A DNA stretch of 64,000 nt from Macrostomum lignano (lineage: Eukaryota): NCBI GenBank assembly GCA_002269645.1, contig NIVC01001777.1:174498-238497 (forward strand), read 5' to 3'. Within the stretch, counting starts at the first letter, position 1, and each line of letters begins with the position of its first letter. This document shows positions 17,790 to 43,879 of the stretch, piece after piece. The position numbers and the translations under genes are program-made. The notes under the pieces were generated by a model, which was not told where the DNA came from, did no database searches, and was given only the letters and a program-made list of their open reading frames with translations.

Positions 17790-18005
17790 AATTACAAATT
17801 TTTGTTTCCTTGCTAGTAAGGAGAAAGAAAAGGAAAGAGAGAAAAAAAAGAAAGGAGCAAAGAGTGGTAAGAAAGAAAAGAGAGGGAAAAGAGAAAAGGA
17901 AAGGGAAGAGATAAGAAAGAGTGAGGAAAAAGAAAGGAAAATTAAAAGGAAAAAGAAAAGAAATAGTAAGCAAAAAGATAACAAAAGTTGAAAGAAAAAG
18001 ACAGC
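17790..18005. repeat. A/G-rich low-complexity tract
   Basis: Purine-only runs that generate spurious F/L/S ORFs. Confidence 0.8.
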
Positions 18006-23433: not shown

Positions 23434-26400
23434 CAGTGTTGCCACCAATACTTGGCTCAAAAAAATCGCAGGGAACTAAAAAAATCGCAGCTAATTTTGA
23501 AGCTCACTAATCAGTGTATTGTGCACTAATTGTGTTCTGCCTTTATATTTATTGTCAATGTCAACCAAAAGATTTAGAAACTTAACAGAAGAAATAATGA
23601 AAAATTATTTGATTAACTTTTCATCAGCAAAATCTAGTCATTGGTCAGTCAAAGTATAAAGTGTTGTTAATAAATAAAAAAGTTCAGCAATCAAACATGT
23701 ATTAAATTGTAACAATATATAGCACTCATCACGCCACTTGGTTCATGGGCCTTAATTTTTCTTCTTTAGAACTTTTGGCAGTCACGACAGAGCAGCGTAC
23801 TCAGCCTGCCGCTTTTGTTTAGCCACCTCTTCAGCAACACTTGACGGTGCACTCAACAGCACTATGCTTGATTTTTAACCGTCGCACCTCGAAGCTAGAC
23901 AAGCAAACTGCGGAGTCTTTCTTGGCTTCTTGTGCCTTTTGAAGTTTGATCATTGCATGCTCAATGTGTTGCTGCACTTGAGCGCGTCACAGTTGTAACA
24001 GGTAGGATTTTGGGTCTTGCCTGCACCTTCTGCTCACGTCGGATAACAAAGAATTGAACTCGAAGCACTGTTTTCTGGGCCCAGGCTGCTGCGGCCTACA
24101 GCCCAGCCAAGGCAATGGCCATGCCTTTAGGCCCGCAGATGCGGGCGAGGGAAAAGTAAAGCGAGCGCCTCCACTGTCTCTCCTTTTATTTTAAACACTG
24201 CAGAACAGGCGCGTGGGAACGTAAACTCTTAAAGGCTACACAGAACAAAATGCAAATTTCGCAGCAAGTTTTTGGTGCAGACATCCTTTGCAAATATGAC
24301 TGCATTTTATGCAACTCATAACAGTTGTGCCTTGTCTTTCTTCTTATGTTTGTCTTTTCCTGGCTAGCTAGCTGCTCTAATTCGCTGCGACAAATGCAGT
24401 CATACAGTTTTTAAATTTTCGTTGGATTCAGGATTAAGGACATGGGTTATAAAAACAAACAATATGATGCAGAACCGAGTTCTAACTCTTCATTTTCATC
24501 AACATACCTGCGTAGCCTTCGCTTGAATTTGCCATGCCTTCTCCTCTGCCAGATGTTGCAGCTCGTTGTCCGTCTTCTCGGCTTTGCTGCTCAGCCAAGT
24601 GCTTCTTGTACTCCACATTTGCATTCAATGCTGCATCCAACAGGCTGTCCGGTATTGGAACTGTACTTGGTTTCAGCCTTCTAGCTGCCAAGTAGCTCTT
24701 TGCCAACAGTGAGTTAAGCCTAGTGCTGTCTGATATTCTGTTCCACTTCTCCTGGGCATCGATGTCATTCGACTTTCCGATGTGCCGCTCGCAGTCTGCA
24801 TTTGAAAAAGCATGCAGCAAGCAATGCCAAGGCGGCCAAGCAGCGGAAAGTCTTCTGACAGAGAAATTGTGTGCCATTCCATTGGCAAAGCCTTCACTGT
24901 TATTGCCTGAGTTGTTTGCATCTGCCTCAGGTTGAAGAGGCGGACTTCCGTTGCTAGCTAGTCAATCTCGCTGGGTGGAATGACTTCCGGCAGGCTGTTA
25001 GCTACATAAAGAACACTTTTTTCCTCAATGGGAAGGGACGTATCTAAAAACGTCAGGCTCCTCAAAATCCTTGAGGCGAACAGCAAATGCGTCTTCAAGT
25101 ACATAGCCAGGCTGACGTACACCTGCTTGAAGGCGAATAGTTGCGGTCTGGCACTTGGACCATTGCCAAGCAGGTCCTTTGCTTTAGAACCCACCATTAT
25201 TTCATCAAGCGGGAGTTGAATGGCAGAGCTCCTAAAGTCCACTTTCTGGATAATCTTCTCCTTGATAGCAACTGGCTGAATGAATTGAACCGCAACGGAC
25301 TCCAGAAACAGCTGACTTTTCAGTGGAGTGGATGCAGTGGACCAGCACTGTGTCACGCTGCTGAAACGTCATCTCGTACTTTTCAAGCAGATGTAGAACA
25401 TGGATGATGAAATTAATTGCTGGAAGTGTTACTGGGTCTTCGATTGCCTGCTGGATTTGCTGCATTCGTGCATTAGTTGAACCTTCTCGATCGCGGAAGT
25501 AGACAGCAAGCACATTCCATTGCTCCTTGATTCGTAGCAGACATTGCAGTAGACTCAGCCAGCGCGTTTCTACGTTCCGCAGAAACGTGTGCCTTGTCAT
25601 GTTTATTGTCTTCTGGAGATCTTCTATCTCCTTCAAGCGCTTTCCACTCCGGGTGAAACAGCTGTGAATATCTTCACAGAATGAAGCGGCTGTCGGCAAA
25701 TGCGATTCAACTGCAATTCAAGTGGCATTGGCAATTACATGCAATGTGCAGCCACCAGTATCAACAAGATGCTTCAGCTCAGGCTTATCTTGGAGGCACT
25801 TAACGACTCCCGAGTAGACGCCCTGCATAACATTGCAGTTTGTTGAAGAAGTCGCCGATCCACTTGCAAAAAGGCAGACCATGATCTAGGATGCACTGAT
25901 AGATCAAACTGGCATATGATTTGGCATCAAACGATTCCATTGTTACGAAGTCCAGAATCTCCGTTAAAATTTGTCCCTCCTGTAGGTAGCAGATACATAG
26001 CATCATGCGGCCATCACTTTCGTTAAAACTAACCAAATAGAATCTAGCCTGCAGCACTGCTTTAGTGATTTTAGTTTGACATAGGGCGCAATGGCATGGT
26101 TCAATAAGTAAGACATTTTTGTCCTTGCACAGCTAAAATCCTTGGCAATCCTAGAATCTGTAAACATAGCCTGAAACAACTCAGATGATTCTTCTCCAGC
26201 AAAAGACTTCGACTTAAAGGCCGCGTTCCATGTCCAAATGACCTCAGATTTGGTAACGGTTGCTTTTCGTTGATCATTGCTTGCTTCACGAGGCCGCTGC
26301 TGCACAAACTGTACCATTGGCTTGGTATTTTGCAGGCTAGCTAAGTTGGTATTGTGCTTGGCTGTCTTTGCGTGGGCCTTCACCACAGAAATGCCGCTTG

Positions 26401-26870
26401 ATGCAACATTCAGTTTCACATTACAGGCTGCACAGAATGCTTCGTGCTCTGCTGTACAAGAACGCAGCCAGGAAACAGCATCAAGTTGCTCGATCCATTT
26501 AGCATCAAAGGCAGTTTTCCTGCTAGTGCTAGCAGTCATAGTGTAGGTGCTCTGGCTGAAAGAAAACGCGAGTAGCTAAAAATTATTGCGCCAAATCTTA
26601 GCAATTCAACAACATAGAAAGTAGATATCGATAGTTAAATATGAGCAGCAAAGAAGTTAATACCTTTCTTCTGATTCTGTTATATTTTAACAATTTAGTC
26701 TCACTGAAACAATAGCAACCTTGAACATAACACAAGAGACGTAGGAAAAGACAAAATGTTGCTGCACACGCACAGTGCACAAGTGCAATTAAAACAATCG
26801 CTAAAACTAGTCTATTATAGCTCGTAACAAAAAAATCGCTAAGCGATTAAAAAAAAGAATAACCACTGGT
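23434..26870 (-). mobile_element. Decayed hAT-superfamily DNA transposon (boundaries approximate)
   Basis: Candidate end CAGTGTTGCCA at 23434; AAAAAAATCGC subterminal motifs at both sides; transposase fragments lie between. No matching second TIR or TSD was found. Confidence 0.7.
24482..26539 (-). pseudogene. hAT transposase pseudogene
   Basis: N-terminal zinc finger (FCAACNVKL...HAKTAKH), FSCARTKMSY, F(D/N)ES, GCTLHVIANA, ETRWLS and SNADCER motifs are spread over at least four frames; there is an in-frame TGA near 25720. Confidence 0.88.
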
Positions 26871-26983
26871 TATTCTTTAATAATGTTCAGTTAAGGGGAG
26901 TAAAGAAGAGTAAAAGAGTGTCACGTTTTGAGTCGTAGTCCCCAAAGAAGGATGAGTTGAACAATTGGCGGTGTAGCAGTTTA

Positions 26984-28576
26984 GGGATAGCGACGTTTGC
27001 CTGCGGGACGTTTGCCAGCCGACGTTTGCCTGCGGGACGTTTGGCTGCGGGACGTTTGCCAGCCGACATTTGCCAGCCGACGTTTGCCAGCCGACGTTTG
27101 CCAGTGGGACGTTTGCCAGCCGAAGTTTGCCTGCCGGACGTTTGCCAGCCGACGTTTGCCTGCGGGACGTTTGCCAGCCGACATTTGCCAGCCGACGTTT
27201 GCCAGCCGACGTTTGCCAGCCGACGTTTGCCAGCGGGACGTTTGCCAGCCGAAGTTTGCCTGCCGGACGTTTGCCAGCCGACGTTTGCCAGCCGACGTTT
27301 GCCTGCCGGAAGTTTGCCAGCCAAAATTTGCTAGCCAATATAAAGCCAGTCAGTGAAAAATTTGATACTGAAACATTCGCAGTTTAGCGGTTTGACAAAA
27401 ACCGTTTTTACTCCAACTTTTTGACGGTTATTCGCATGTATACAAGTTTGAAAGCAAAATATATAAATTATGCAGTTCATCAGTCTAACGTCTAATATCT
27501 AGTTTAACAACGATTTTGGCACAACATATCAAAAGATGAACATTGGGTTTGCCTCGTATGAAAGCAATAACAATTGTTGTGCTGAAAAGATGAAAACTCC
27601 CTATGGCCTTCAAAACATTTTTCATCGATTTCGAGTGCTGCGTACTTCTACTTTAGTAGTCCTTGGCATGACTAAGCTTTGCATATGTAGTGTCTAGCGC
27701 TTGCTATTCTACTAGCTTGCTACTGGCGGCTTGTCTGGCTATTCAGCTATATAGCTTACTATAAAAACGTACCGCATTCGACTCGTCTACACATGTACGT
27801 TGAGATCGCGGTTTCCTTGCTTACTTGAGTAGTAATACAACAGCATTGGAATCAATTTGCTTACTTTTAGATCTCCCAATGAACTGAGAAATAGATGAGC
27901 CAGAATTACCGCTCAGCAGCTCTTTTTGTTTGCCTCATAACTTAATCGCTGGAGATTCCCGTTGTAATCTGCGCGTCTTCTTTCGCACATCAAAAATCAA
28001 ACATCTCAAACTGGGAAAAACGATACACAATTGTCAAAAGTTAACAATATTTTCACATTCAAAGAAAATCTTTGTTAAACTGGATATTAGATGCATAAAT
28101 TTCATAATTTATAGATTTTGCTTTCAAACTTGTATATATGCGAATAACCGTCAAAAAGTTGGAGTAAAAACGGTTTTTGTCAAACCGCTAAACTGCGAAT
28201 GTTTCAGTATCAAATTTTTCACTGACTGGCTTTATATTGGCTAGCAAATTTTGGCTGGCAAACTTCCGGCAGGCAAACGTCGGCTGGCAAACGTCGGCTG
28301 GCAAACGTCCGGCAGGCAAACGTCGGCTGGCAAATGTCGGCTGGCAAACGTCCGACTGGCAAACGTCCCGCTGGCAAACGTCGGCTGGCAAATGTCGGCT
28401 GGCAAATGTCGGCTGGCAAATGTCGGCTGGCAAACGTCGGCTGGCAAACGTCCCGCAGGCAAACTTCGGCTGGCAAACGTCCCGCTGGCAAACGTCGGCT
28501 GGCAAATGTCGGCTGGCAAACGTCCCGCAGGCAAACGTCGGCTGGCAAACGTCCCGCAGGCAAACGTCGTAGACCC
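26984..28576. mobile_element. Non-autonomous foldback / MULE-like element (1593 bp) with ~530-bp TIRs containing 14-bp tandem repeats
   Basis: 26984-~27510 is the reverse complement of ~28070-28576. Ends are GGG...CCC; flanks are AGCAGTTTA (26975-26983) and AGCAGTTTG (28577-28585), an 8/9 match to a 9-bp TSD. Confidence 0.9.
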
Positions 28577-29636
28577 AGCAGTTTGTGTAGCGGTAGCACT
28601 TCTAAACAGACCGTTGGTTAAATTCGTTGTGGTCTTGGCCTTTATATTTTTCTCAAAAATAGTAATAGAATTACAGAGGATATAACAATATGGGCACTGG
28701 CGGCTGCAACAATGAGTTTATGCTAAGATGAGTAGGCGACGGCGGATGGCGATGAGGCAATAACGGTGAGCAGCGGTCGTGAGTAGCCAGAAGTGGCGGA
28801 GAGTGGCGCTAGCCGTAGTAGAAGTACAAGTGGAATACGGTGTGTAACAGGCTGGCACAGACAGAGGAGCCGTGGCGAGAGATAGGGAGGCTCGAGGCAG
28901 CCAGGAGAGAGAGAAGGAAAACGAGAGCCGCGAAGTGAGGAGGCCCCCAGCCCGCTGCCAGGCGGGGGTTAATAAAGAGCGCAAAAGGGGGTAGCATAAA
29001 ACACGGGGGGTTTTCATTGGCTGGCAAGAGAATTTGAAATTATCGATCGTGCTAAAATTTACACACAAACGCAAGGCCTACCACCCAGAGGGAAATTTTG
29101 GGTACGCCTAAGGGTACCCCGACGGCGGCGCCTTTAGTCGGGCGGAGTCCGCCAGGGCGACTGGCTGTCCAGGCGAAGCGGAGTACATCTGCACTGCGCT
29201 TGGGCGCCGGTAGAGAAGTTTTTTTTCTACTACTAGTAGAATGTTAAGCGCATGCATCCTAGAAATTAAATCCAAATTTGCACGGGCAAATTTGCACCTA
29301 CTGCACGCGGGCAGCACGGGCTTCTAGCTTCGTAGCAGCTCGTCTGCTTACTAGCTTAATAATGGCTTAATTCTATTATGATTTTCAACGAAGTCCTGAG
29401 GTTTTGGCTCGTGTATTGTTCGATATACGATACGAGCGTATTGGCAAATATACTTAATTTTGTTTGTGCTTATAAACCGTTTAACAAAATTCAGCATTTC
29501 ATGGTATTGTTGTTATACAATGCTTAGAGATTAACATATTTACTTGTCTTCCATTGAAGTACTCAGAAGAGAGAAGACAATAAAGATGAATATGAGCGTA
29601 AAAAAGCAAAGATACGGAAAATCAGTTTTCGTTTCT

Positions 29637-32600
29637 TCAAAAACAATCATCATTGCTCGAACTTGAGTCGCAATGCTCCATATTGGTGTCCGAAAGCTCG
29701 GAGTCGCTGGATTGCAGCCGAACCACTTTCATGCGTCGCTTAAATGCTCCAACGTCACTCCTGCGCTTACGAGCAACTCGACTTGAAGTGAGAGCTTGAC
29801 AGTCAAAGGCCGTGGCTGCAGTCGCAGTGACTTGCCGCTGCCGAGCACCAGAAGGCGTTGCAGCTGGGGCTTGGCATGGAGAGGCCGTGGCTGCAGTCGC
29901 AGTGACTTGCCGCTGCCGAGCACCAGGAGGCGTTGCATCAGAATGGGTGCGGCTAATAATTGATGCAACCGCCGGATTGATTGGCGTTAAGGCATCGGGA
30001 GCTGCTGCAGTGGATTTGCGGTGCAATCGCTTCTTTAGCCGATCGCTTCCACGCTTGAGCTGCTCACGACAAGCTTCTGCAACTGCTTTGACCGAAGGCC
30101 TGCCGGTGTCCTCGGTTCTGCCGAATAGCTTGGTCATCGCCTCTGTCAAAAAATAAATTGCATGGATTTTAGGTATAGTTAAATGAGTAAAAAGTATAAA
30201 TGTGCTACTCATGATCAGAACTGATAGTAGTGCTTATAGCATTTATTTCTTTTCTCTGGTTTCGTTTCGTTTGATGTGTATATATCAAAAAGCTTACATT
30301 TATATGTTCTTTCGCTATCATAATTTTTTATGTAATGTATACAGCGGGCAGCCAGGATCGTTGGCCCTTCCGTCAAGGTGCCCTATAAGTATAACCTTAG
30401 CACCCGCCGGGTCACTGGTGGACTTGCCTTTGCACATAAACTTCTCCTAGGTCGTGGCTCCGAAGAGCTTAAACTTCTCCTTCCATCTCTTATCCAGAAG
30501 TCTAGCTATGGCTTTCGTTCAAATAACTGCCTGTATGAATTCACCTTAAAAATTCCCTTCTATGGAACAGAAGTTCGAAAACGGTCCTTCTCCACAGTAC
30601 ACTGAGATATGGAATTTACTGCCAGCAAGTCAGCAACCCTAGCAGACCCTGGCCTCGGCGCAAAATAGTTCAAGAGCCAGATCTCCCAGAAGCCACTATG
30701 CAAGGACTCCTAAACCTAAGCATCGGTTTAGGAGTCCTGGAGTCCTAAGCATTTAGGAGATGCTTAGGTTTAGGAGTCCTTGTACTATGAGCACCACAGA
30801 GTCCTCCCACCATCTCAATTGCCTTCCACCTCTCTTCCTTCAACATTTCTTTTGTCATTCTTATCTCTCTCTTCATCAGTTTCTCTGTAGCCATGGGGAA
30901 CCCTTGTGGTATATTCGTCTCTGACCACTGACCAGTGACCAGTCTTATGGTGAGCTTAGTATAATAATAACAATGATTATTATTGTTATTTCTTTATATA
31001 TTCTCTAACTGGCTCGCAAACTTTTAAGAATCAAACCAGTTGTGATTGTGCGTCAATGATAAACTTCCGATTTAATAGTCTATGTGTCTATGTGAAAAAT
31101 ATGATGCCTACCTTGAATATAAGGCAGAAAAGCCATCTTAAATCCGAGGTCATCAATTGATAGTTGCGTTGAAACTCCTGCTTTGAGGGCTCGCTCACGC
31201 ATATCCGTCCCCTTGAAGTTGACCACAGCCTGCATCCGAAGCGATAGGATGTTGTCCAACATATCACGGACCGAGTCTTGCCACTTAACTCGTCGGAAGA
31301 GCCTGAGGTGAGTCCTCAGCTGTTGAACAGAAAATGCGAACATCATCGTCGGTGGAGAGTCTTAAACCCTTGCCACATTAAGCGCAAATAAAATTACATT
31401 ATGTAAACTCACCGCTGAAAGTCGTTGTTCCGACGCTTCAACAAAGTCAATGTAATCATCCCAAGAATCGATTACTTCAAAGCCAGACACTTGAGGTGTT
31501 TCAGCCTGAGGATGCAAGATGGATGACATTTGATGCATCGCAGCGCGAAGTCCGGTTACGTCTTTCTGCAAGGCCTCCACCTTGGCCTCAAGCCGAATGC
31601 TTGTTACAGTGTACTCGCGAAGGAGGCTGAGCTGCACAAACAAAAGTCCCTCGGAGCTATCAAGTTGGAAGTCGACATTATCCTGAATCTGCTGTTTCAA
31701 TTTTCTTATATATTCCGGGCCGAATCTTGCTGATGCAAGCACTGGAAGATTTGGAGTCGCAGGAGTTGCTGTTGCTGATTCAATCACTGCAACTCGTTGT
31801 CTAGGCCTTGGCTTTGGCATGGTGGAGGCAATTAGATCAACGGCAGAATCTCCTAGAGCCGCCACTGTCACCGTGTCAGCTACTCCATCCGTCTCCGCCT
31901 CCAGCGCAGCATCCGATTCATCAGCAGTCGCTTCCGCCGCTGCAGCATCCGCGTCATCTACCGCCGCCTCCGCCGCTGCAGCATCCGCTTCGTCTGCAGC
32001 CGCCTCCGCCGATGCGGCATCCGCTTCGTCTGCTGCCGCCTCCGCCGCTACGGCATCCGCTTCGTCTGCTGCCGCCTCCGCCGCTACGGCATCCGCTTCG
32101 TCTGCTGCCGCCTCCGCCGCTGCAGCATCCGCTTCATCTGCAGCCGCCTCCGCCGCTTCAGCATCCGCCTCGTGTTCTGTTGCATCAGTCGCAGTGGCTT
32201 CCTGCTCCTCAGTCTCTGGCTCGGAGTCGGGAAGTGGCAGTAACTGAGCGACAGTTTCTGGAGCGTCATGCGTCAGAAGAAGCGCAGCATTCCTCGCAAA
32301 GTTCGTCCCTCGCTCTCTGTCGGAGAAGAACGTTTCGGTATCAGATGCTGAGCCTTGTGACAGGTTCTGAAAGAGTAGGTTTAGGATAGATATGTAGGTA
32401 AAGTCAATCATCAATCCTTTTCAAAACTTTTTTTCCGACCTCAATTTTCTAACTTTTCCTCCGTCCTCTAACCTCCCCCTAAGCCTGATTGGCATTTTAA
32501 TTCTTCAATCCTCAAGCCTAAATGCCATTGCTTGCAGTTCAAACTTACACCTGTTTGATAATTTCGACGGGCCTGCTTCGCGTCAGATGAGGAGAAAACT

Positions 32601-33012
32601 CGCGGCTTGACCAGCTGCATTATGCTACGCAGACGTAGCTTCTTAGCAATAAGAGTGCGTACAAACAAGAAGCTGCCTGGCTGCATTGTATCGTCCAGGA
32701 TGACCTGTTGTAAAAAGCGGTAGAATTGAAATATCCCAACTTCCGAGGATCAAGACGCAGTAATTATAGAATTGAATGCATATACATGTAAAGAGTGGAG
32801 CAAAAATACGAGTAGCAAAAACTCACCTGAACAATAACTGCTGGGTAATATGTACCATCATATAGTGCCTCGCACATCCATGTCTCATCGGAATCTCTCA
32901 TTTTCAACCATTCGGCTTCAGAGAGGGCCTCCAGATTCGGTGACAGCCTTACGTTCTCTCTCGGCGCCTCAATAACTTGTCTGTCCGCTTTAAAAATAAC
33001 AAGGAACTTCAT
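29637..33012 (-). CDS. Transposon accessory protein, ~669 aa, 5 exons; putative DUF4806/BEN-like C-terminal region and acidic Ala-rich repeat
   Basis: Exons 32827-33012, 32549-32704, 31413-32366, 31112-31319 and 29637-30142 are joined by GT-AG introns (phases 0,0,0,1) with no stop until 29637. The VVNFKGT and REQLKRGSDR segments resemble DUF4806-type proteins (recalled, not searched). Confidence 0.8.
30701..30782. mobile_element. 82-bp micro-MITE with perfect 24-bp TIRs (CAAGGACTCC...GGAGTCCTTG)
   Basis: Flanks are CACTATG and TACTATG (6/7 match to a 7-bp TSD); it lies in intron 4 of the accessory gene. Confidence 0.7.
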
Positions 33013-33582
33013 TTCCGAAAGATAAAAAATACTATTTTAATTTTCGTCAATGCCACAAGCCAATTCAAGTTTCGGGAAGGAAATTGTTTCCCTTATTATT
33101 TTTCTCCTCCATAAACTCTAGGAGTGAGCTAGTGACATTACAGGCGCAATCCCATTGGTCCGCCCCTCTTCCCACTGCTAGCGCCGCCCAATTCTCCCTC
33201 TCTATCTTGCTGATTAATGAGATATTTTAGAAATACAAACTGTAATAAAAATATAGAAAGAAAGGAAAAAGCAAGACAGAAGGCTATAATTCCTGATGCA
33301 TCCTGATTCCTGATTACATGTATATCCCTGATGCAGACCGGATAGCGGATAATCTCCCTCAGGTCAGTTCGAAGAACCCTCAAAGGCGAAGAGGAATTGG
33401 TGGAGCTTTGTGTGTAGAAAGAAGAATGCGAACTATATCATGGATTTCTCTGTTCGATATGTGTCTCACAGATGTCAAATAAGAAAAAGACAGAAAGAAT
33501 CAAGAGTTTGAACCTTGGTTCGGTGCGTATAAAGATTCGAAGCCCCATCTTTGTCAGAAAATTCTGTTGCTCAGGGTGCGCC

Positions 33583-33867
33583 GGGGGCGTTTCACATTCT
33601 CGAAATATCATATCATCGAAATTTCACAACGCCTAAAATTCTGCACTGTTCTTTCACATCCTCGAAATTTCACATTCTCGAAACTTCACATCCTCGAAAT
33701 ATCACTTCCACGAAATTTCATAACGTCGAAAGAAGTTAGACGTGATATTCCGAGGATGTGAAAGATGGCTTCTTTCGACGTTATGAAATTTCGAGGTTGT
33801 GAAATTTCGAGAATGTGAAGTTTTTGGCTTTCTACGTTGTGAAATTTCGAGGAAGTGATAGCTGCCC
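33583..33867. mobile_element. 285-bp foldback/MULE-like MITE with internal TCGAAATTTCAC repeats
   Basis: Perfect 9-bp TSD GGGTGCGCC at 33574-33582 and 33868-33876; GGG...CCC ends; the two halves carry the repeats in inverted orientation. Confidence 0.88.
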
Positions 33868-33877
33868 GGGTGCGCCC

Positions 33878-34085
33878 ACAGACCATATAGTAAATAGACT
33901 GCGCATATAGCTAGGCCGGCATGAGCGTGCAGAGCGTGAGAAAAACACAAAGCAAAAAATGTTACTCCACGGATCGATAGTGGGGAAGCACCTACCTCCC
34001 CTACCCACATTTACATATATATATAAAAATTATACGCATTATATTTAATTTCTACCCTGTGCCAGTCTTTTTACTATATGGTCTG
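33878..34085. mobile_element. ~207-bp MITE with 16-bp TIR CAGACCATATAGTAAA
   Basis: Perfect TIR; degenerate flanks GGGTGCGCCC / GGGTTCACCC. Confidence 0.7.
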
Positions 34086-34589
34086 GGTTCACCCCTCATT
34101 TTGTTCTGATTGAATGCACAAACACAATTCAGCATTCTTGCCCAACTCCCAATTAAAGCACGAGGCTTCACAATGGGCTTGAGAGGTTCCGCAAAGACCA
34201 AAGACCAAAAACGGCACATGAGGCACAACGGAATGAATAGTCTGTATAGCATATGTACAGCACCTAAAAATCGAAAAAAGCCTGGGACGCAGACAGGGAA
34301 GCAAACAGTCACACAGGCCCTTTTGCTCATTGCTCTGGCTCTTTGCTCTTTGCTGCTCTTTGTCTTCACATCACACTAAAAAGCCCTTTACCTAGTCCTA
34401 GCTAGAAGGCATTTTGCTTGTGGGGCCTGTCTTCTAAGCAAAATAGAAGAAGGTTGGGGCAGGGACTCCTGAAGCTAACATTCCTAACAACCTTGGCTTG
34501 GCTTGCTTTACTAGTCCCGACTCCCGACTCCCTGGGTGGGGCCAGCAAATTTCCTAATTTTATTGCACAAACTATACCCAAAGAAGCAT

Positions 34590-34870
34590 TGCGAATTGGA
34601 CTGCTAATCGGCCTGTGGATATCTCAGAAACTAAAAGTCACGCGGCGATAGGTCCTTCTCTGCTTGATGGAGCTCGGCATGCCCAATGACTGTGTAAAAA
34701 TTCAGAACTGTGGGATTATCTCAGGCCTCACAAATCGAAGTGGGCTTTTCAGACTTTCCCCATTTCAAAGCATTGCAAATTGGGCAGCTAATCGGCCTGT
34801 GGATATCTCAGAAACTAAAGTCACGCGGCGATAGGTCCTTCTCTGCTTGATATAGCTCGCATGCCTAATC
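34590..34870 (+). repeat. Two copies of a ~180-bp repeat (…GGATATCTCAGAAACTAAAAGTCAC…)
   Basis: Diverged inverted counterpart of the array at 40113-40870. Confidence 0.75.
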
Positions 34871-36108
34871 TTCCCGTGGACCCCACTGAATTTGTTTTGT
34901 TCACAATTTATCACTCCATTGTTTGCTGAAATTTGGTGTGGTCTCCACGCGACGTATAGGTTTCCATTGGGTACTGTTTCATTCTAAACAAGCATTAGAA
35001 CTGTTTAGCACTTTACAAATGAAAGAAATGTACGCTGAGTACGTGCAAGTTTGCAACATACTGATTATGTGCATGTACAAGCTACATACAGGTTTGCAGT
35101 CTGGCTGGCTCCAATTAATTCATGGTTTGGAGTCCTGGACCAAAGCCCAAAACACGATGAGTTGAGGCCCGCTACGCCGCTAGGGCACCCGTTTTCGCGT
35201 GAGCTGGGGCCCTCTAGGCCAGGGCCCGACCGATGGCGTGATAAGTAGGGGTAAGGTAAAAATTGTCCACATGCTTGCACACTTTGCTCTCATAAAAGAC
35301 TGCCAGAAGTATACTGTACACTGACAGCATAAAGAATTCTTGCAAAGCAAGTGTTGTCCCATAAAAAATGTACACTCACTCGTCCCTCCTTCCCTCCCCC
35401 GGGGTCCGACCAGAAGAGACCATACTGTTGTGTTCACAGGGAGTTGCAAATTCCCTGCGGGTCCCCATTATCTATGATTCTATGGGGTCCCCGCGTGGTG
35501 GCGCAAGGGACGTGAGGTTGCTGCTTCCCTCCCCTCAGCTCAAGGACAATGATCAATAAATCTTTAAACGGAGAAGCTTGCGATAGACTTGCAATAACAA
35601 AGCTGATGAACCCCTGTTTGCTTGCAAACATATAATCCACTTGCTGAGTGGACAGAATAGAAAAAACTAGATAATTCCCTCACGCTTCAATGCATGGGTT
35701 TTCATCAAGGATTTCTATACAAACCAAGCCAGCAAGTATATTTTTGCAACACACAGAAAGTAAAGCTAGCTTGTAATTGTAACTCTCCAACAGGCAACCC
35801 AATGCTCAGAGCCAGCTAGGCCATTATTAATATCAATGCTTCTATTCCAACACTAATAGAAAAGCGAGCAGCGAGCCTCGGTATTGATCACCCTCTTTGT
35901 CCATAAATGAATGTACAAAATAATGAATACATGCACAAAGCCATCTAACAACAATATATTTTAATTTTACCCATTGCATGAACAAAATGAAAGAATATAA
36001 AGAATGCAAGACAAACCAGCGCAAGGAAAATATACAAAGAGGACCCTCCCGGAGAAGGGACATTTCGTAAAGCATTTCCTGTTAGAGTGAAAGCTTCGTA
36101 GGTCTGGC

Positions 36109-36136
36109 CAAGGAGTTCTACATTTAGAACTCCTTG
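36109..36136. mobile_element. 28-bp hairpin insertion CAAGGAGTTCTA-CATT-TAGAACTCCTTG
   Basis: Perfect 12-bp IR flanked by a perfect 7-bp direct repeat GTCTGGC (36102-36108, 36137-36143). Confidence 0.7.
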
Positions 36137-36258
36137 GTCTGGCCCAGAAAGCAACACGGCAATCGAAGTTAGGCATGGCAACATTAAATCACTTCACTTT
36201 TGTCAATCTGTCATGGTGGTAATGGTGGTACGGTTTCTTTGGGGGGGGGGGTTATTCA

Positions 36259-36281
36259 ACAGACCATATAGAATGGTCTGT
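36259..36281. mobile_element. 23-bp hairpin insertion ACAGACCAT-ATAGA-ATGGTCTGT
   Basis: Perfect 9-bp IR flanked by a perfect 10-bp direct repeat GGGTTATTCA; its terminus matches the 33878 MITE. Confidence 0.7.
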
Positions 36282-37773
36282 GGGTTATTCAGCGCCCCGC
36301 TTCCAGTCCCGGACTTAGGGGTCCTTGGATTACTTGGACTGTGAGAAATCGAGACACTTCATGAAACGTAGAAAAAAATAGAATAAAGATCGGTTCCTCC
36401 ATATCTCCTCGTCAACACAGCAAGATAGGCAAGATAAGGGTATTTGCTTTGTGTCTAAAAGTTGGGGTCCATATTGAAGCCAAAAGCTTCGGGACCATCC
36501 ATATATACCCATATAGCAGAGCACTGGCTCTTAGCCTCTTAGCAATTTAGCAACTGCTTTTGCAAACCCGCAATTACTCCCGCAAGACAGAAAGCAACCC
36601 CGCAGAGACGGGAGTGAAACGAGAACACGGAAGACAAAGACAAACATATAATTGTAATGTTCCAATCCAACAAAAAGTAAGACACCATTAATTTAGACAA
36701 GGAGTACGTTCGTTAAAGCGAAATTTTGCTTTCTAGGCCACCTCTCGTTCGATGCTTTCTATCGGAAGCATGTGGCCACTGGCCAGCCAAGGAATTCTCT
36801 ATACTATACCCATCTGCTATTCTATGAATGGCCTGCGGCCCGGGTCCGGCTAGTTTCACTTCCAGGTATAAAGGATTCCAATTTCCTTGGGCCAGTCAAG
36901 GACCCCTAAAGCTAGGAGCCTAGGACCCTTAATGCTAGTTTTATTTTGGGGTCCTCGTGCAATTTTATCACGACACATGAAGCGACACGACAGAAAATCC
37001 CGCAGGAAGTGGTGACTGGGGAATTTTACATTATTGAGTCTCCCCAGTCCCCATTACAAGGGACGGTAGAGTAGTAGGTAGATCCATGCAGGAAGTTGTG
37101 GCGGTGGGCGGACTAAGGTTGAGGTGTTCGTGTTGGACATGTGAAGGCTGCATGGAAGTCCAGATTCAAAGGAAAATGTTTTTAATTTCGATTCACTATT
37201 TTCGCGCATACGCACTCTCCAAAATCAATAGTCCAGCTTCCCTCTGTAGGCCAGAAATTGTCTAACAGGATGAAGCCTTGATAAATGAGTAGTCAGGCAG
37301 AGTAGCAACGACAAATCCTTGGCGTCGGTCGACATCGATAAGCATAGCATAGCAGGTCATAGCAGGTCAGGATAGCATATGGCCATGGCCATGCCGGTAG
37401 AGTCCCTGCAGCATGTCGTACACTGGCTCAAACAGTGGCTCTCCGCTGAGATGATTGGCCGGCCAGCTGCAGACGCAAAGGAATTGCAACTTGCAAGGGC
37501 CTAAAAGAATGTAAGCATCATTACAAATAGAGATTCTGTGATTTAGTAAGAATAGTTATATTGATAATAACTCAGTCTTATCATAGTTAAGTTGAACAAA
37601 ATCAGAAGACGTGTATCGATTTGCAAATGTCAGATCGAATGGTGCAAGTTCTATGAAAATCTGTTTTTGAGTCGTTTTCTCTGTAATCGACTGTGCATAA
37701 AGACATGCAGACAGAACATTCCAATTTTAGTATAGTGGATAGAAGAAGATTTTGAATAGCTAAATAGACTCAC

Positions 37774-39729
37774 CTAGCAGTCACCACCAGCTAGTGGAAC
37801 CACGTAGTATGTGACATTCTGGCCATCATGAGGGAGCAACCAGCATTTCCGCTGAGGCTTGCCAGTTAGGACGACTTCCGTGAGACGATAAATTCCAATT
37901 CCAATTTTCATTGAGCTGTACGGATATGAATAGACCTCCCTTTCAGGCAGCAAAACTCGGCCTGATGCTTCTCCGCTTTCACTGAAGCCCTCAATTAGAA
38001 TGCAGGAGTTGTTTATGAAGCAACAGTTCTCTCCAAATTTACAGCTGTACTTTAGTGGCTTGACGGGCGCAAATTGCGTGAGCGTGATGTTCCGCACGTA
38101 CAGAACTTGTTTCACAGCATGAGCAGCGGCATGTCTGGTCACTTTCATGCGACGCTTAATGGAGCCCAGATAGTTTTCAAAAGGGAAAGTAGAAAAGTTG
38201 TTGACACTCCCATACCTGCGAACAAATTGATCAATATGCAGTAACGCGTGAAAATTATAACTAATTGACGCCTGGCCAAACAATTGAGCGGATCGTTCAA
38301 CAAAGACTTCCAGACAGCTCTTTGCTTGGTCGAAGTATTTCGCATGCCTCTCACTGGAGTAGATGTACATGGCAAAATGCAGCAACATGAAATGATCATA
38401 CAATGCGTCCTTCAAGTATCCTCTAAAGAATACAGGAGCAAGATATAGCAGATACTGCCTGTACTCGGATGCCTTTAGAAATTTCAGATCAGAGTCGAGC
38501 CTTCTGGGTCTTCTTTGAAAATTGGACGGAGTCCATGGAGCTGCAGCTGCAATTCTGTCCGACAAACGAGTGATGCACGCTGGCAGAATTTTGCTTTTCC
38601 GTCCACCGTCCTTGCTGAAGTAGTAGAAAAACAATTTTCTCACAATTCCTAAGCAAGCTGCATGCTGGAATTCCACAGGGAAGGACCAAACAAAGTCAAC
38701 ATTTGGCAATAACAAAAGAGGCGATAACTTTCTCTTCTTTTGATTCGACTCCTTCCCAGCGCGATATTCTTCTCCGCACCTACTTTCGCCGACCGAAGTA
38801 GAATATGTCACTCTGTTGCTGACATACTGTCCGATGGCTCGGCAATAAGTGCATCCAGTATAAGCTGTGTGCCCCGCGACGCTGCAGATGTAGGCCCTTG
38901 CTGGCGTATCACACACAAATTTGATTGATGAGAACATGACGCTGACTGCATCAGCAATTTTGACTGGACCCGACAGAAATCGAGTGGCTTCATGGCAAAA
39001 TTTTCGAAGAAAGTCTTCAAGTGCCGGCTTTCCTTTTCCAGCATAAACAGCCACCGGAAATGGTCTCGCAAAAGTCTCCGGTATTAGCATGAGGATAGGC
39101 CATAGACCAAAATTACTCGATCGATACAGCGGTAATCCATCCGTGTTCAGAAGGGCAGAGAATGAGTAGAAAGTTGATTCCTCTGTTGATCGCATACTGT
39201 CCGGCCTAAGGTTTAGCTGGCCCTTGCTGTGCAGCAGTTGTAAATTGTCAAGAATCGAGATGTAATGAAAGTAGCCGTCACCCATTTCTTCAAGCGAAGC
39301 ACTCTTCTTACCACCTTTCAAAATCTTGTCGATCATGTGCGGAGACTTCGGTGCAGGTAAGCCGATTTTGCGCAATCCAGTCAACAGAAATATCCTGCCA
39401 TTGCGTGAGACATTGTACAGCACAAAGAAGAGCGCCAACAAAGTTTCAAGCTTCTCGTCCAAGCTGCGATTGTCTTCTTCCCTCTCGTCTTCATCTTCAT
39501 CGCCGCTGTAGCTGGCGCTACTCACTGACTCAAGCTCGTCAAAAATCGGTTCGCCGTTGGGATCCACTTCCAGTGTCTCTGTGACTTGTTCCGGGACAGC
39601 TTGCTGCGGCATTGCTTCATCAGTCATCAGCTCATCCTCACCATCAACTGGCAGGTCGGCTGCCCCCGTGTCTTCAAGAAGCAAGTTCATCAGATACTTG
39701 CTGGCTTGCCGTCTCACATTCCGAGACAT
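37774..39729 (-). CDS. EnSpm/CACTA-type DDE transposase, intronless, apparently intact (~651 aa from MSRNV)
   Basis: Motifs NTDGLPLYRSS..LWPIL, YAGKGKP, FVCDTPARAYI, GHTAYTGCTYC, PSNFQRRPR, KASEYRQYLLY and STFPFENYLG; uninterrupted frame. Confidence 0.92.
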   Translation of the reverse strand: MSRNVRRQASKYLMNLLLEDTGAADLPVDGEDELMTDEAMPQQAVPEQVTETLEVDPNGEPIFDELESVSSASYSGDEDEDEREEDNRSLDEKLETLLALFFVLYNVSRNGRIFLLTGLRKIGLPAPKSPHMIDKILKGGKKSASLEEMGDGYFHYISILDNLQLLHSKGQLNLRPDSMRSTEESTFYSFSALLNTDGLPLYRSSNFGLWPILMLIPETFARPFPVAVYAGKGKPALEDFLRKFCHEATRFLSGPVKIADAVSVMFSSIKFVCDTPARAYICSVAGHTAYTGCTYCRAIGQYVSNRVTYSTSVGESRCGEEYRAGKESNQKKRKLSPLLLLPNVDFVWSFPVEFQHAACLGIVRKLFFYYFSKDGGRKSKILPACITRLSDRIAAAAPWTPSNFQRRPRRLDSDLKFLKASEYRQYLLYLAPVFFRGYLKDALYDHFMLLHFAMYIYSSERHAKYFDQAKSCLEVFVERSAQLFGQASISYNFHALLHIDQFVRRYGSVNNFSTFPFENYLGSIKRRMKVTRHAAAHAVKQVLYVRNITLTQFAPVKPLKYSCKFGENCCFINNSCILIEGFSESGEASGRVLLPEREVYSYPYSSMKIGIGIYRLTEVVLTGKPQRKCWLLPHDGQNVTYYVVPLAGGDC

Positions 39730-40112
39730 CTCTGCTTTAAAAGCGATCAATTAGGTAAGTTGTAAATTTGAAAGCAATTAGCATTCGTTGGTGTTTTATC
39801 AATTTGGCTGAAAAAGTCGGAAATGGGAATGGTGGGTTTGGGCTTTAGCAGGAAGGCAGCCAATGGGCATCTGGCAATGCAAATAACGAACCGCCGTAAT
39901 TGGTTCGGCGGTTCGGCGGTTGGCAGTAATTGGTTCCGCCCCGTATCGCTCATTTTCTCCCAGAATGCAGACACCGACTTCTTCATCAAATATTGAACAA
40001 TATTGAGCAAAGCGCGAATACCAGAAGGCCATTTTTTCAGTTCAAACAAAAGTAGCCGGGCGCAGTTTTGACCATCTTGGTCCCTGCTGCATAGATCATA
40101 ACATCATGGCGA

Positions 40113-40870
40113 TCAATCAGATAAAAACCATTGCCGAGTGACTTTTAGTTTTTCAGATATCCAGAGGTGGATTAGCAGGTCTGAGAATGCCCGCTTGCGA
40201 TTTGTGAAGTTTGAACTGATCCCACAGTTCTGACTTTTCACACAGACCTTGGGCATCCAGTGCGCAGTCAATCGGAGAAAGAAACATAGCCGAGGGACTT
40301 TTAGTTTTTCAGATATCCAGAGGCGGATTAGCAGGTCTGAGAATGCCCGCTTGCGATTTGTGAAGTTTGAACTGATCCCACAGTTCTGACTTTTCACACA
40401 GACCTTGGGCATCCAGTGCGCTATCAATCAGATAAAAAACCATTGCCGAGTGACTTTTAGTTTTTCAGATATCCAGAGGTGGATTAGCGGCCAATTTCCA
40501 ATGCTTTCAAATGGGGAAAGACTAAAATGACCCACTTTGATTTGTGAAGCCCGAGATGAAACCTCCGTTCTGACTTTTCACACAGACCTTGGGCATCCAG
40601 TGCGCAGTCAATCGGAGAAAGAAACATAGCCGAGGGACTTTTAATTTTTCAGATATCAGATATCAGATATCAGAGGCTGATTAGCAGGTCTGAGAATGCC
40701 CGCTTGCGATTTGTGAAGTTTGAACTGATCCCACAGTTCTGACTTTTCACACAGACCTTGGGCATCCAGTGCGCTATCAATCAGATAAAAAACCATTGCC
40801 GAGTGACTTTTAGTTTTTCAGATATCCAGAGGTGGATTAGCAGCCAGTTTGCAATGCTTTCAAATGGGGA
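40113..40870 (-). repeat. Array of ~160-bp repeats (GTGACTTTTAGTTTTCAGATATCCAGAGG…), about five copies in two variants
   Basis: Near-identical tandem copies seen directly. Confidence 0.88.
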
Positions 40871-42518
40871 AAGTAAAAAATTATCCGCTTTGATTTGTGG
40901 AGCCCAAGTGGAGCCCATTATCCGAGGGTTTGTCACCGCAGTCCTCGAAATTCACGCAGACTTCCACTCTTGTGGTGGTAGTGATGGTCTCCAGATTTAC
41001 ATCGGGGCCAATTTGCGAAGTCTTGGTGACCGTTTCGGTTGGCTCCCAGCTACATGTAAATGGGTCGCAGAAGTTCGCCCGTCCTTTGAAAGCCTGCTTC
41101 CACGTGCTTCTGCTTCCAGTCGCATTGTCGTCGGTGTCGTTCGTGTTGTTATTTGCATCGGCGAAGAACTCGCGGAATATGTCCTCGGCAAGCCACACAC
41201 GCAGCGAAATCACGAATGTATGACAGTTGTAACATTTTGCTTTGTTATTTGTGGTAGCTTATACGAGAAGTAGAAGGGAAAACGAAGCGGGAATGCCACT
41301 GATAATGATAATTATCAACAACAATGACTACTGAAAATGCTTTTCGGGACAATTTTTTGCTGCCAATTCTACCGAGGCGCGGATCAAGGATTTTCCCCAG
41401 GGGAGCAAGCATATACGTCAGTGACCAATGTCCAGTTGAAACGCCCAACTCAAAGTGGAAAATGGAAATGAAAATTGAACAAAGTTTATCTTACTGCTCT
41501 ACTGTAAGTAGATAGGTGGGAGAAAAGGTGTGACAAGAAAGAAAAAAATTTTATGCTGACAACAATTATTGCATTATGAATTCATGATGCGTTTGCATCA
41601 TTATTCGACAAAAATCGTTAATGGGCTCAATACACAAAGATTAAATAAATTTGTTACTTGTATGCTCGATCATCTCGCCTTAGCATCGATTTTAACAAGA
41701 AAATTCGTCAACAATACTCGTAAAACAGTGCGCCAAATAGTGCGCCTTGGGAATTGTAAAGAGAACTAAAATAAATAGAATTTTTTTTTGCTTTTATAAA
41801 TTTGCAATCTCCAAAGCATCATGGTCCTCGCATTTCAGGGAAAATCAACCGCCTTTTTTATTGCATGAATGCAGTAAAAAAAATCTTCCCATAATTGACG
41901 GGCGTACCCTGGCATACCCCTAGGCGTACTGCGCCCACAGTGCGCCCAAATTTTTTTTCCCACTGGGCAAATACACAGTGAATTAGCAATTGATACAGAT
42001 TATTTGCACGCTACAAGTAAACGTTAAAATAAACTATTGGAGAAATTAAAATGAGATATTGCAAGGGAAACTACAGTCCAACGGCCCTTTTGCGGGACCA
42101 CTTTAAACTAGCAACGTCACAAAAGGGACTTGGTTATTAGCTGAGTGCCTGGCATATATTTATAGACTGCTTCGTGGAACATTCTATAATCAAGGAAATG
42201 TGTGCGTGGGAGTTTAAATTTCCTAATATTGAAAGTGCTATTTACGCGGATATTTCGAGAATAATGTTTTTGCTGAATATGGAAAGTTCGCGAAAGTTTA
42301 ATACAAGGTCATTACAATAGAAACTAGAATATTTTATCTATCATGTTATTTATAGTCTTAGGGACAGAAGTAGAATTTTTATTTGGATTTAGAAGGTGAG
42401 ACATGAACCTTTTACTCCTATGTCCATTATTTAAAAAAGTGCCAACTACTTTTAGTAATACGAGAAGCTGTTTTCAAATTAAACATCAAACCAATTATAT
42501 CTCACCCCATTTGTGCAG

Positions 42519-43745: not shown

Positions 43746-43879
43746 GCTCGAGTAGATTGTGACCATTGCGGCGTGGGATAAATGGGGACTAATCCCATGA
43801 ACATAGTCGAAAATGGCACCGACAATTAAGGCGCTCCTTAACAGGCTAATAAATTGTATATTGGTTGCATGAAAAATCG

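Follow-up and report, generated by a model that had tools for sequence, protein, structure and literature searches.

In the maize transposon En/Spm, the protein TnpA acts as an end-binding partner of TnpD. A two-gene arrangement is also known from PIF/Harbinger, a DNA transposon whose transposase needs a separate Myb-like DNA-binding protein to reach the ends. For its own element, TnpA both regulates the promoter and is required for transposition, and its binding sites are short motifs repeated in the subterminal regions (PMC1636069). In animals, CACTA-related elements were described in 2006 as having a second, fast-evolving protein without detectable relatives (PMC1636069). One of these, SmTRC1 of Schistosoma mansoni (DeMarco et al. 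2006, PMC1636069), yields shorter spliced products that lack the transposase domain and were proposed as TnpA analogues; no similarity of these products to anything in other animal elements was found.

The locus described here lies in a 64-kb stretch of DNA from Macrostomum lignano (the window, meaning the whole stretch analysed). It holds an apparently intact, autonomous DNA transposon whose ends are formed by inverted CCCAGWGGGAAA, and both a transposase gene and a second, accessory gene are found within these boundaries (Table 1). In the transposase, D204, D281, C300-x2-C303, H501-x3-H505 and E525 are invariant among 11 homologues; a D-D-E triad together with the C(2)C and H(3)H motifs marks out CMC transposases (PMC12730594). 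The ORF itself gave no direct match to Pfam. Its distant homologues P0027, P0029, P0030 and P0032 carry PF02992 (Transposase_21) together with PF06869 (DUF1258), and P0024 shows a weak match. Judged by its sequence, the element is a member of the CACTA/Mirage/Chapaev (CMC) group, in the animal "TRC" or Mirage-like branch. A DNA-binding domain of its own could not be recognised in the transposase.

Table 1. Features of the transposon and its two genes, in window coordinates.
Feature	Position	Strand	Remarks
Left TSD copy (CA)	29082..29083	+	
Whole transposon, CMC-group (Mirage/"TRC"-like)	29084..41967	.	12,884 bp; inverted termini and 2-bp TSD
Left terminal inverted repeat CCCAGAGGGAAA	29084..29095	+	
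Two tandem 11-bp subterminal units GGGTACGCCTA, AGGGTACCCC	29100..29120	+	candidate accessory-protein binding sites
Exon 5	29637..30142	-	aa 502-669 and stop; junction backed by continuity with paralogues
Bipartite basic motif RKRR-x6-KRRMK, RKRRSDVGAFKRRMK	29727..29771	-	aa 626-640; candidate nuclear localisation signal
75-nt tandem duplication	29783..29932	-	encodes repeated ...GARQRQVTATAATA... motif
DUF4806/BEN-like helical domain	30009..31484	-	aa 409-546; spans introns 3 and 4
Exon 4	31112..31319	-	aa 433-502; C-domain HMM match E 5e-22
Exon 3	31413..32366	-	aa 115-432; disordered acidic region, long helix, start of BEN-like domain
Long predicted α-helix	31515..31655	-	aa 352-398; candidate coiled coil/oligomerisation helix; AlphaFold
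36-bp coding minisatellite	31906..32173	-	TRF: 7.4 copies, 90% matches; acidic Ala-rich AEAAADEADAAA units
Exon 2	32549..32704	-	aa 63-114; P0001 reproduces junctions
N-terminal β-barrel-like domain	32696..33012	-	aa 1-65; spans intron 1; AlphaFold
Exon 1	32827..33012	-	aa 1-62; start codon 33012-33010
Internal repeat	34593..34737	.	inverted relative to 156-bp repeats at 40112-40843
Transposase ORF, 658 aa	37774..39750	-	intact DDE; first ATG 39729
156-bp tandem repeats 40112-40488 and further copy 40707-40843	40112..40843	.	partners of 34593-34737
Three tandem ~10-11-bp subterminal units AGTACGCCTA, GGGGTATGCCA, GGGTACGCC	41901..41929	-	right end
Right terminal inverted repeat CCCAGTGGGAAA (minus-strand reading)	41956..41967	-	
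Right TSD copy (CA)	41968..41969	+	

CCC-core terminal inverted repeats with a 2-bp TSD, by which such elements are recognised (PMC1636069), were found in the window and at two other M. lignano loci. L002 has CCCAGTGGGAC at both ends and the TSD AT/AT, and L003 has CCCGGTGTAAAA and TT/TT, the TSDs being seen in both cases with the ends set at CCC. In L001, inverted GTAGCCTAA motifs, one at 3892 and one at 14297, were all that could be seen of the boundaries. The terminus conserved across elements is CCC(A/G)G(T/A)G. One copy of the exact window element was examined. In it, a 4.7-kb repeat-rich spacer lies between the transposase and the accessory gene, and the two internal repeat sets flank the transposase gene, so that a rearrangement or a nested insertion is possible. 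A separate smaller element bounded by the repeats at 34593-34737 and 40198-40843, which would exclude the accessory gene, was rejected as the outer boundary because CCCAG termini and a TSD were found. Elsewhere in the window, ORFs at 24.4-26.5 kb look hAT-like by eye and gave no Pfam match.

The accessory gene had been read from the letters alone as part of a transposon. This was borne out by its place inside a TIR/TSD-bounded element with an intact DDE transposase, and by the recurrence of the pairing in L001-L005. Homologous gene pairs were found at three further M. lignano loci. In L001 and L002, the accessory homologue stands head-to-head with the transposase at a distance of ~340 bp; in L003, a BEN-like ORF follows the transposase within the same TIR-bounded element. 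At L004 and L005, from two fish genomes, a transposase homologue is followed, in the same orientation, by a DUF4806 gene, and the seahorse model P0016 is a transposase fused to a DUF4806 region. Gene order therefore varies, being tandem in the window, L003 and the fish and divergent in L001 and L002. As compared at the sequence level, the transposase-DUF4806 pairing is common to flatworm and fish elements, and the accessory gene is thus not unprecedented. Among 1.84 billion representatives, 16 relatives of the accessory protein were found, which share a layout of N-domain, linker, helix and C-domain. The source was looked up for ten of these, and all ten came from M. lignano.

The relationship to DUF4806 was claimed at the outset from pattern recall, and it was upheld by profile comparison. 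A profile of the flatworm family aligned to 18 fish DUF4806 proteins over 118 columns with an hhalign probability of 93.7% (E 1.9e-7), whereas an unrelated control gave E 0.49. N465, G468 and F491 are invariant in the joint alignment. No Pfam model, those for DUF4806, BEN and Tudor included, matched the full-length protein, the three sub-fragments tried, the seven C-domains scanned on their own or any of ten relatives; for DUF4806, the full-length protein, its pieces and seven flatworm paralogue domains gave nothing at E-values of up to 10. The gathering score of Pfam PF16064 is 25 bits, and the seahorse protein P0016 reaches just 24.8 bits. A BLASTP comparison with P0016 gave no signal, and hhalign against P0016 alone aligned the expected region weakly (E 0.0028, probability 11%); the 18-protein fish alignment was therefore needed. 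Exact-protein look-ups of P0001, P0016 and P0077 returned no record. UniProt labels paralogues "DUF4806" or, for P0045 and P0051, "BEN domain-containing", and Pan et al. (2023), cited by way of PMC10723407, place DUF4806 among the BEN subtypes. Taken as sequence evidence, these comparisons support a diverged DUF4806/BEN-type domain at the C-terminus.

The AlphaFold model of this domain has a pLDDT of 88.5, and of more than 90 across most of its residues. Foldseek against the PDB matched it to Insv (4ix7, probability 0.97, TM on target 0.56), Bsg25A (4x0g, 0.92, 0.57), BEND6 (7yun, 0.69, 0.67) and NACC1 (8yzs, 0.41, 0.45). These were the only matches with a raised probability, at E-values of 0.4-2.8, none of them significant; three of the four structures are DNA complexes. 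A search of viral models returned two bracovirus BEN proteins at low probability and nothing useful, with all E-values above 0.1. When the C-domain profile was compared with PDB sequences, the best match was the integrase-binding domain of LEDGF/p75, which was not significant (E 0.14). The sequence-only reading had named Pfam and AlphaFold/Foldseek as checks on the spliced protein; the model was well predicted with BEN domains on top, but Pfam stayed empty. Its BEN call is upheld in part: the structural search ranked BEN domains as most probable, but every E-value exceeded 0.1 and the Pfam BEN model did not match. A BEN-like fold is the most probable reading of the model, and from that fold we infer that the protein may bind DNA.

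A candidate target is found at the ends of the element. The motif GGGTAYSCC occurs only four times in the 64 kb, always at one or other end of the element and with the copies of the two ends inverted to each other; it is the only over-represented short motif, and as a proposed binding motif it was chosen post hoc from these ends. The subterminal GTACGCCTA motif singled out earlier matches at 29102(+) and 41921(-) and is real at both ends, but it is not conserved as such in L001-L003. By analogy with TnpA, we regard the product with moderate confidence as an oligomerising accessory protein that binds the transposon ends of an apparently autonomous CMC element. As modelled, the protein is modular: a small β-barrel at the N-terminus is followed by an Ala/Glu-rich spacer, disordered or helical and differing in length, then by a long helix that probably mediates oligomerisation, by a diverged DUF4806 (BEN-subtype) helical domain and by a basic tail that bears a repeat and a bipartite motif resembling a nuclear localisation signal. 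The BEN-type domain would recognise the 11-bp GGGTAYSCC units inside both ends, oligomerisation through the long helix would bring the two ends together, and the resulting complex would recruit or position the DDE transposase. We infer from these features that the protein binds DNA at this motif, that it oligomerises and that transposition may require it. The protein may, as a second activity, regulate transcription of its own element.

That activity could also be the main one. In this case, the protein would be an autorepressor or would counter host silencing by binding in or near the promoter, after the model of BEN-solo factors such as Insv, which repress their targets, and it would not serve as a cofactor of cutting and joining. 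Among the structural matches, the BEN domains solved in complex with DNA belong to sequence-specific transcription or boundary factors (see also PMC8887127). The ~340-bp divergent promoter region common to both genes in L001 and L002 would suit autoregulation, and maize TnpA both represses and reactivates its own promoter (PMC1636069). However, GGGTAYSCC lies at the element ends, away from the starts of both genes in the window. A mainly regulatory protein is rather unlikely, and such a role could coexist with the end-binding one. The anti-silencing role put forward from the sequence alone had analogy with maize TnpA as its sole basis and is not supported.

It is considerably less likely that the gene belongs to the host, either domesticated or merely neighbouring a transposase, with a function in cellular chromatin. 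Zebrafish DUF4806 genes are discussed as ordinary cellular genes (PMC10723407), and some paralogues (P0042, P0044-P0047) may stand alone. Against this, the gene lies within the element bounded by TIRs and TSD, its family is multi-copy in M. lignano, and the linkage to a transposase recurs in six loci (the window and five others) from two phyla and several diverged lineages.

AlphaFold places β-strands in the N-terminal residues 1-64, with a pLDDT of ~90 over aa 1-60, and W35, Y51 and Y56 are invariant across seven paralogues. The top Foldseek match was the double Tudor of RBBP1 (2mam, probability 0.89, TM ~0.3, 60 columns), followed by SspB and then Sac7d, all with E above 0.6. A profile search of this domain against PDB sequences gave chance matches only, and Pfam gave none. 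Against the fish N-termini, only residues 1-22 of both align, at E 0.18, and homology was not established. Of the Tudor/SH3-like N-terminus first suggested, the small β-rich barrel is kept as a prediction, but the Tudor identity is weak. The other segments seen by eye were largely recovered: the roughly seven copies of a 12-aa repeat are a minisatellite of period 36 in TRF, the coiled-coil string falls inside a single long predicted helix, and the RKRR/KRRMK tail is present as a candidate nuclear localisation signal. The duplicated motif is real but measures 25 aa and not 23, its two 75-nt units (29783-29857 and 29858-29932) being 85% identical.

With a pI of 4.05 for aa 115-300, the middle of the protein is strongly acidic, and it is also repetitive. 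The Ala-rich repeat could on this view be what matters for function, mimicking DNA or histones so as to titrate chromatin or defence proteins of the host while the other domains serve only as scaffold. This we consider very improbable, and the earlier suggestion of a mimic found no support, as the repeat is conserved neither in paralogues nor in fish proteins: P0037 has EAAAA and then KAAAA units in its linker, P0042 and P0044-P0047 have S/T/P/Q-rich linkers, and the fish proteins have Ser/Pro/His-rich repeats at the equivalent place. Moreover, near-identical copies differ in repeat number (P0001 and the accessory protein), and the predicted isoform P0033 omits the repeat altogether. Being unconserved, variable in copy number and absent from P0033, the repeat fits a variable spacer.

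The gene model on which these readings depend is a 669-aa frame in five GT-AG exons on the minus strand (33012→29637), as had been proposed. The exons total 2010 nt (669 aa and stop), and the introns of 122, 182, 93 and 969 nt are GT..AG in all four cases, with the exon-2 donor in frame (GT|GTAAGT at 32549). UniProt A0A1I8G447 (P0001, M. lignano) corresponds to exons 2-4 with two identical junctions and one repeat unit fewer. Where junctions 1, 3 and 4 fall, the protein of paralogue P0037 runs on without a break; its model, like those of the other paralogues, comes from the RNA-seq-based GenBank annotation (PMC5730564). For exon 1, identity is 53% with the L001 copy and 48% with P0037. With the frame open throughout and P0001 and P0037 in agreement, the five-exon gene is confirmed at the level of sequence. 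It is very unlikely that the five-exon model reflects an annotation error or a pseudogene in decay, with no such protein made from this copy: its splicing is predicted from sequence, intron 4 is unusually long with repeat-like sequence, and the UniProt models P0001 and P0033 stop where exon 4 ends, but the frame is open across canonical splice sites, family profiles match all five exons, and P0037 has equivalent introns and an unbroken protein over junction 4.

For this one gene, the result is an advance at the level of annotation and brings no new principle. From the locus it emerges that in at least one branch of animal CACTA-related elements the second gene encodes a diverged DUF4806/BEN protein. 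DUF4806, whose function is unknown and which some animal genomes carry in abundance, thereby gains a concrete, testable role, and some BEN-type DNA-binding factors may have originated in transposons. Two Hydra species have 69 and 54 copies of DUF4806, listed beside transposase domains (PMC7642931). Tentatively, and with the odds rather against it, DUF4806/BEN proteins could be the ancestrally dedicated end-binding partners of Mirage/"TRC"-like CMC transposases across animals (flatworms, teleosts and probably Hydra and insects), and cellular DUF4806 genes, possibly with part of the BEN repertoire, would be repeated domestications. HARBI1 and NAIF1, which arose from Harbinger elements, would be a parallel. 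An apparently intact two-gene transposon is also a possible native genetic tool in M. lignano, for which transgenesis is established.

Among the known systems, PIF/Harbinger is comparable by analogy only, as its transposase superfamily and its DNA-binding fold are both unrelated. The BEN-solo factors Insensitive and Bsg25A/Elba1 of Drosophila and human BEND6 and NACC1 are the closest in predicted structure (TM on target 0.45-0.67), and their BEN domains are all sequence-specific DNA binders. They differ in being host transcription or boundary factors that are not transposon-borne, they lack significant sequence similarity to the accessory protein, and the Foldseek E-values are not significant. 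En/Spm likewise has a second element-encoded protein beside a CMC-group transposase, and short subterminal repeats in inverted orientation; TnpA, however, is an alternatively spliced product of a single transcription unit, and the accessory protein of the window has a gene of its own. Sequence homology to plant TnpA was not detected (no Pfam family of any kind matches), and the likeness appears to be functional only.

DUF4806 (PF16064) proteins, such as teleost si:dkey-242h9.3-like and Drosophila CG42854, the latter described as a structural equivalent of the Insv BEN domain, have a homologous C-terminal domain by profile-profile comparison. They share the layout of a short β-rich N-terminal domain, low-complexity linker, helix and C-domain ending in ...DR...R-rich, and their genes have the same neighbour, a CMC transposase (L004, L005). 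The accessory protein differs from them in its low identity (~15%), in 17 residues inserted behind the conserved N-x2-G motif and in its failure against the Pfam model, and the N-terminal domains are not demonstrably homologous. The animal TRC/Mirage-like elements also resemble the window element. SmTRC1 likewise encodes a Tnp2-type DDE transposase; both have a 2-bp TSD and a size of ~9-13 kb, and the TIRs of TRC elements begin with CCC, as in CCCAGTCAAC of the Aedes element (PMC1636069) compared with CCCAGWGGGA here. Unlike the SmTRC1 products as reported, the accessory protein of the window belongs to a recognisable, conserved DUF4806/BEN family that is also found in fish elements.

The accessory gene, which encodes 669 aa in five exons, was found to be a part of a transposon, as it lies inside the boundaries of the element and is recurrently linked to the transposase. 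The transposase ORF has 31 homologues, and Pfam Transposase_21 and DUF1258 are present in the distant ones. Across 11 aligned homologues, D204, D281 and E525 are invariant together with C300-x2-C303 and H501-x3-H505; the same residue signature is given for the CACTA/Mirage/Chapaev (CMC) transposases (PMC12730594). The subterminal motif GTACGCCTA, proposed in the sequence-only reading, was recovered once per strand, and the four copies of the broader unit GGGTAYSCC in 64 kb all lie at the two element ends, in opposed orientations. Outward of these units, the left side has CCCAGAGGGAAA and the right side, in minus-strand reading, CCCAGTGGGAAA; the dinucleotide CA borders both termini. The termini and the flanking CA delimit an element of 12,884 bp with both genes inside, which in this exact form is known from one copy. 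It contains a 4.7-kb spacer. Related elements of the same design were also delimited at two other M. lignano loci, L002 and L003, and the chance odds of the three 2-bp duplications (window, L002 and L003) are about 1 in 4096. The subterminal units of L003 differ from the 11-bp units of the window, as expected if ends and binding protein co-evolve in each lineage. This suggests that the end motifs are lineage-specific and may co-evolve with the accessory protein.

Coordinates of the features discussed (positions in the window unless a locus is named)
Feature	Position	Strand	Remark
Exon 1	33012-32827	minus	ORFs joined at GT..AG
Exon 2	32704-32549	minus	ORFs joined at GT..AG
Exon 3	32366-31413	minus	ORFs joined at GT..AG
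Exon 4	31319-31112	minus	ORFs joined at GT..AG
Exon 5	30142-29637	minus	ORFs joined at GT..AG
Intron 4	30143-31111	minus	969 nt
Coding minisatellite	31906-32173		36-bp unit, 7.4 copies, 90% matches
Tandem duplication	29783-29932		75-nt unit
Transposase ORF	37774-39750	minus	658 aa
Motif GTACGCCTA	29102; 41921		one per strand
Window element	29084-41967		flanked by CA
L002 element	3936-13324		terminus both ends CCCAGTGGGAC; flanking duplication AT
L003 element	8350-18627		terminus both ends CCCGGTGTAAAA, with 11-bp subterminal repeats; flanking duplication TT
L003 subterminal tandem units	8350-8400; 18527-18627		11-12 bp, GATTCGAAGTC / TCGACGTCGAT, behind the CCCGGTGTAAAA termini
Retroelement-like fragment in L001	7588-8400		interrupts exon 3
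Internal inverted sequence	34593-34737		~145 bp
Tandem repeats	40112-40843		156-bp unit
Palindromic structure	26980-28570		outside left end of element
ORF run	24440-26540	minus	differing frames
Satellite	2609-3225		30-bp unit
Long minisatellites (examples)	608-1870; 8135-9697; 43875-45126; 46004-46979; 57682-58604		Tandem Repeats Finder (TRF)

The pairing of the two genes is kept across two phyla, and they are linked at every locus inspected (the window and L001-L005). At the M. lignano locus L001, the accessory homologue and the transposase start about 335 bp apart on opposite strands; exon 1 of the homologue is 53% identical, and a LINE-like insertion disrupts this copy. At L002, the gene of the paralogue P0037 stands head-to-head with a transposase 50% identical to that of the window. 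L003 belongs to a more distant lineage; there, part of an ORF that lies inside the element, downstream from the transposase, matches the C-domain profile (E 1.3e-5). In the fish Triplophysa (L005) and Astyanax (L004), a gene annotated with PF16064 (DUF4806) is preceded on its own strand by a homologue of this transposase, and in a seahorse gene model (P0016) transposase and DUF4806 are fused. The gene order thus varies, being tandem in the window, L003 and the fish, and divergent in L001 and L002.

The L001 copy is decaying: a retroelement RNase H-like fragment (HCGIAGNEAADQAA..., recognised by eye) interrupts exon 3, and the reading frame of the adjoining transposase is broken near 11230. Within the window element, a sequence is inverted relative to the tandem repeats on the other side of the transposase gene (78-80% match). 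These inverted repeats could mark an inversion, the gene order of the window being unlike that of L001 and L002, or a nested insertion.

The five-exon frame of the sequence-only reading was reproduced, with 2010 nt at canonical GT..AG sites and introns of 122, 182, 93 and 969 nt. The 36-bp coding minisatellite was likewise found by TRF and encodes AEAAADEADAAA-type units, and the basic tail reads RKRRSDVGAFKRRMK (aa 626-640). The 23-aa motif described as duplicated is indeed duplicated, but the actual unit is the 75-nt tandem duplication. With the repeat masked, the sole match to the protein among 5.8 billion proteins was UniProt A0A1I8G447 (P0001) from M. lignano. It is identical over exons 2-4, with both junctions the same and one repeat unit fewer, so the minisatellite length differs between copies. 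When 1.84 billion representatives were scanned in full by HMMER with aa 327-557 as query, 16 relatives were returned, and all ten that were looked up come from M. lignano. P0037 is a full-length paralogue of 608 aa that is 37% identical in the C-terminal part; P0042 and P0044-P0047 are more distant (27-33%), with the order of parts unchanged. The introns of the P0037 gene match the positions of introns 1, 3 and 4 of the window, and the protein is continuous across all three. P0037, P0044 and P0050 are GenBank BOX15_Mlig models, an annotation derived from a genome-guided RNA-seq transcriptome (PMC5730564), which indicates that family members are transcribed and spliced.

Intron 4 is longer than the other introns (93-182 nt) and than those of the paralogue (133-150 nt). 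Within it lies a palindromic sequence of the TTTAGGAGTCC type that is similar to the 30-bp satellite, so a repeat insertion is probable. The exon 4 boundary is the exact end point of the UniProt models P0001 and P0033 (A0A1I8GKM9). The latter, a predicted isoform, splices exon 2 to an internal acceptor at about 31690, just ahead of IQDNVDF, and drops the entire acidic repeat region.

Neither the accessory protein, whole or in fragments, nor the flatworm relatives matched any Pfam family. When the C-terminal part of P0016 was used as the query, 47 fish proteins of 250-770 aa were retrieved, most with PF16064 and laid out as a short domain at the N-terminus, a linker of low complexity, a helix and then the DUF4806 region. 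The flatworm C-domain profile matched a profile of 18 fish proteins with 93.7% probability (E 1.9e-7, 118 columns, aa 409-546); the control against an unrelated transposase alignment gave E 0.49. The joint alignment conserves an N-x2-G motif, the F after it and a C-terminal L...DR...R-rich stretch, and the flatworm clade has a 17-residue insertion. AlphaFold2 on this alignment gave a pLDDT of 88.5, above 90 for most of the domain. Among PDB structures, Foldseek gave raised probability to BEN domains only (Insv 0.97, Bsg25A 0.92, BEND6 0.69, NACC1 0.41), with TM on target of 0.45-0.67 and E-values of 0.4-2.8 that are not statistically significant alone. Three of these four structures contain bound DNA, which for BEND6 is methylated. 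Published work treats DUF4806 as a subtype of BEN (Pan et al. 2023, as cited in PMC10723407; see also PMC10789644), and UniProt names several paralogues 'DUF4806' or 'BEN domain-containing'. By profile and predicted structure, aa 409-546 is thus assigned as a diverged DUF4806/BEN-type domain, in agreement with the sequence-only reading.

One long helix is predicted ahead of this domain (aa 352-398). For aa ~372-440 (profile positions 46-113), covering the helix and the first BEN helices, the best PDB sequence match was the LEDGF/p75 integrase-binding domain. The match is non-significant (E 0.14) and may well be chance, though curious for a transposase partner.

Residues 1-65 are predicted to form a β-rich unit (pLDDT ~90). 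In structure it comes closest to small SH3-like barrels, namely the RBBP1 double Tudor (probability 0.89), SspB and Sac7d, with TM ~0.3 and E above 0.6. Of the Tudor/SH3-like N-terminus proposed earlier, a small β-barrel is therefore likely, but the Tudor assignment is tentative. The paralogues keep W35, Y51 and Y56 without exception, so an aromatic cage is possible. The stretch between the domains is acidic (pI 4.05).

Just outside the left end of the transposon, 14-bp-unit arrays (CGACGTTTGCCAGC) lie in inverted orientation in a large palindromic structure, with a 252-nt arm pair of 96% complementarity around a ~600-bp centre. The whole resembles an element of the foldback type. Further out, a run of ORFs (...RWLSLLQCLLRIKEQW..., ...CAACNVKLNVASSGISVVKAHAKTAKH...) looks by eye like a degraded hAT-type transposase; Pfam gave no match for these ORFs. 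The window is extraordinarily dense in minisatellites: TRF reports 78 rows whose periods span 4-181 bp, and many of them exceed 500 bp in length, consistent with simple and tandem repeats making up ~15% of the M. lignano genome (PMC5730564).

Both the transposon clade, Mirage/TRC-like CMC elements, and the domain family, DUF4806 as a BEN subtype, are already known, and part of the protein sequence is in UniProt. Animal 'transposons related to CACTA' (TRC; DeMarco et al.) were described as 9-13 kb long, with a CCC core at the ends and a duplication of 2 bp, and include an Aedes element with the terminus CCCAGTCAAC (PMC1636069). The window, L002 and L003 elements fit this description. A second, TnpA-like product was proposed for TRC elements and said to have no detectable relatives (PMC1636069). 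Among the papers searched, none links BEN or DUF4806 to CACTA, EnSpm, Chapaev or Mirage elements, and priority is not claimed. The wider association of transposase and DUF4806 is put forward as a hypothesis.

The DDE transposase carries no recognisable DNA-binding domain. The accessory protein combines a predicted BEN-type fold with a long helix and a tail that resembles a nuclear-localisation signal, and the element ends bear short tandem 11-bp units in inverted orientation. In the most economical model, which we somewhat favour, the accessory protein would bind the 11-bp subterminal units, oligomerise, pair both ends and recruit the transposase. Alternatively, it may regulate the element's own transcription, as suggested by the 340-bp divergent promoter that the two genes share in L001 and L002; this is rather improbable, and is compatible with end binding. 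A host gene is unlikely for a gene inside the element, as is a mimic, the acidic stretch being conserved in neither sequence nor charge and read as a spacer (the predicted isoform P0033 is without the repeat), and an artefact of gene modelling is unlikely alongside the spliced paralogues. The end-binding role proposed for the accessory protein is, in Harbinger elements, the job of a Myb-like protein. TnpA does likewise for TnpD in maize En/Spm (PMC1636069).
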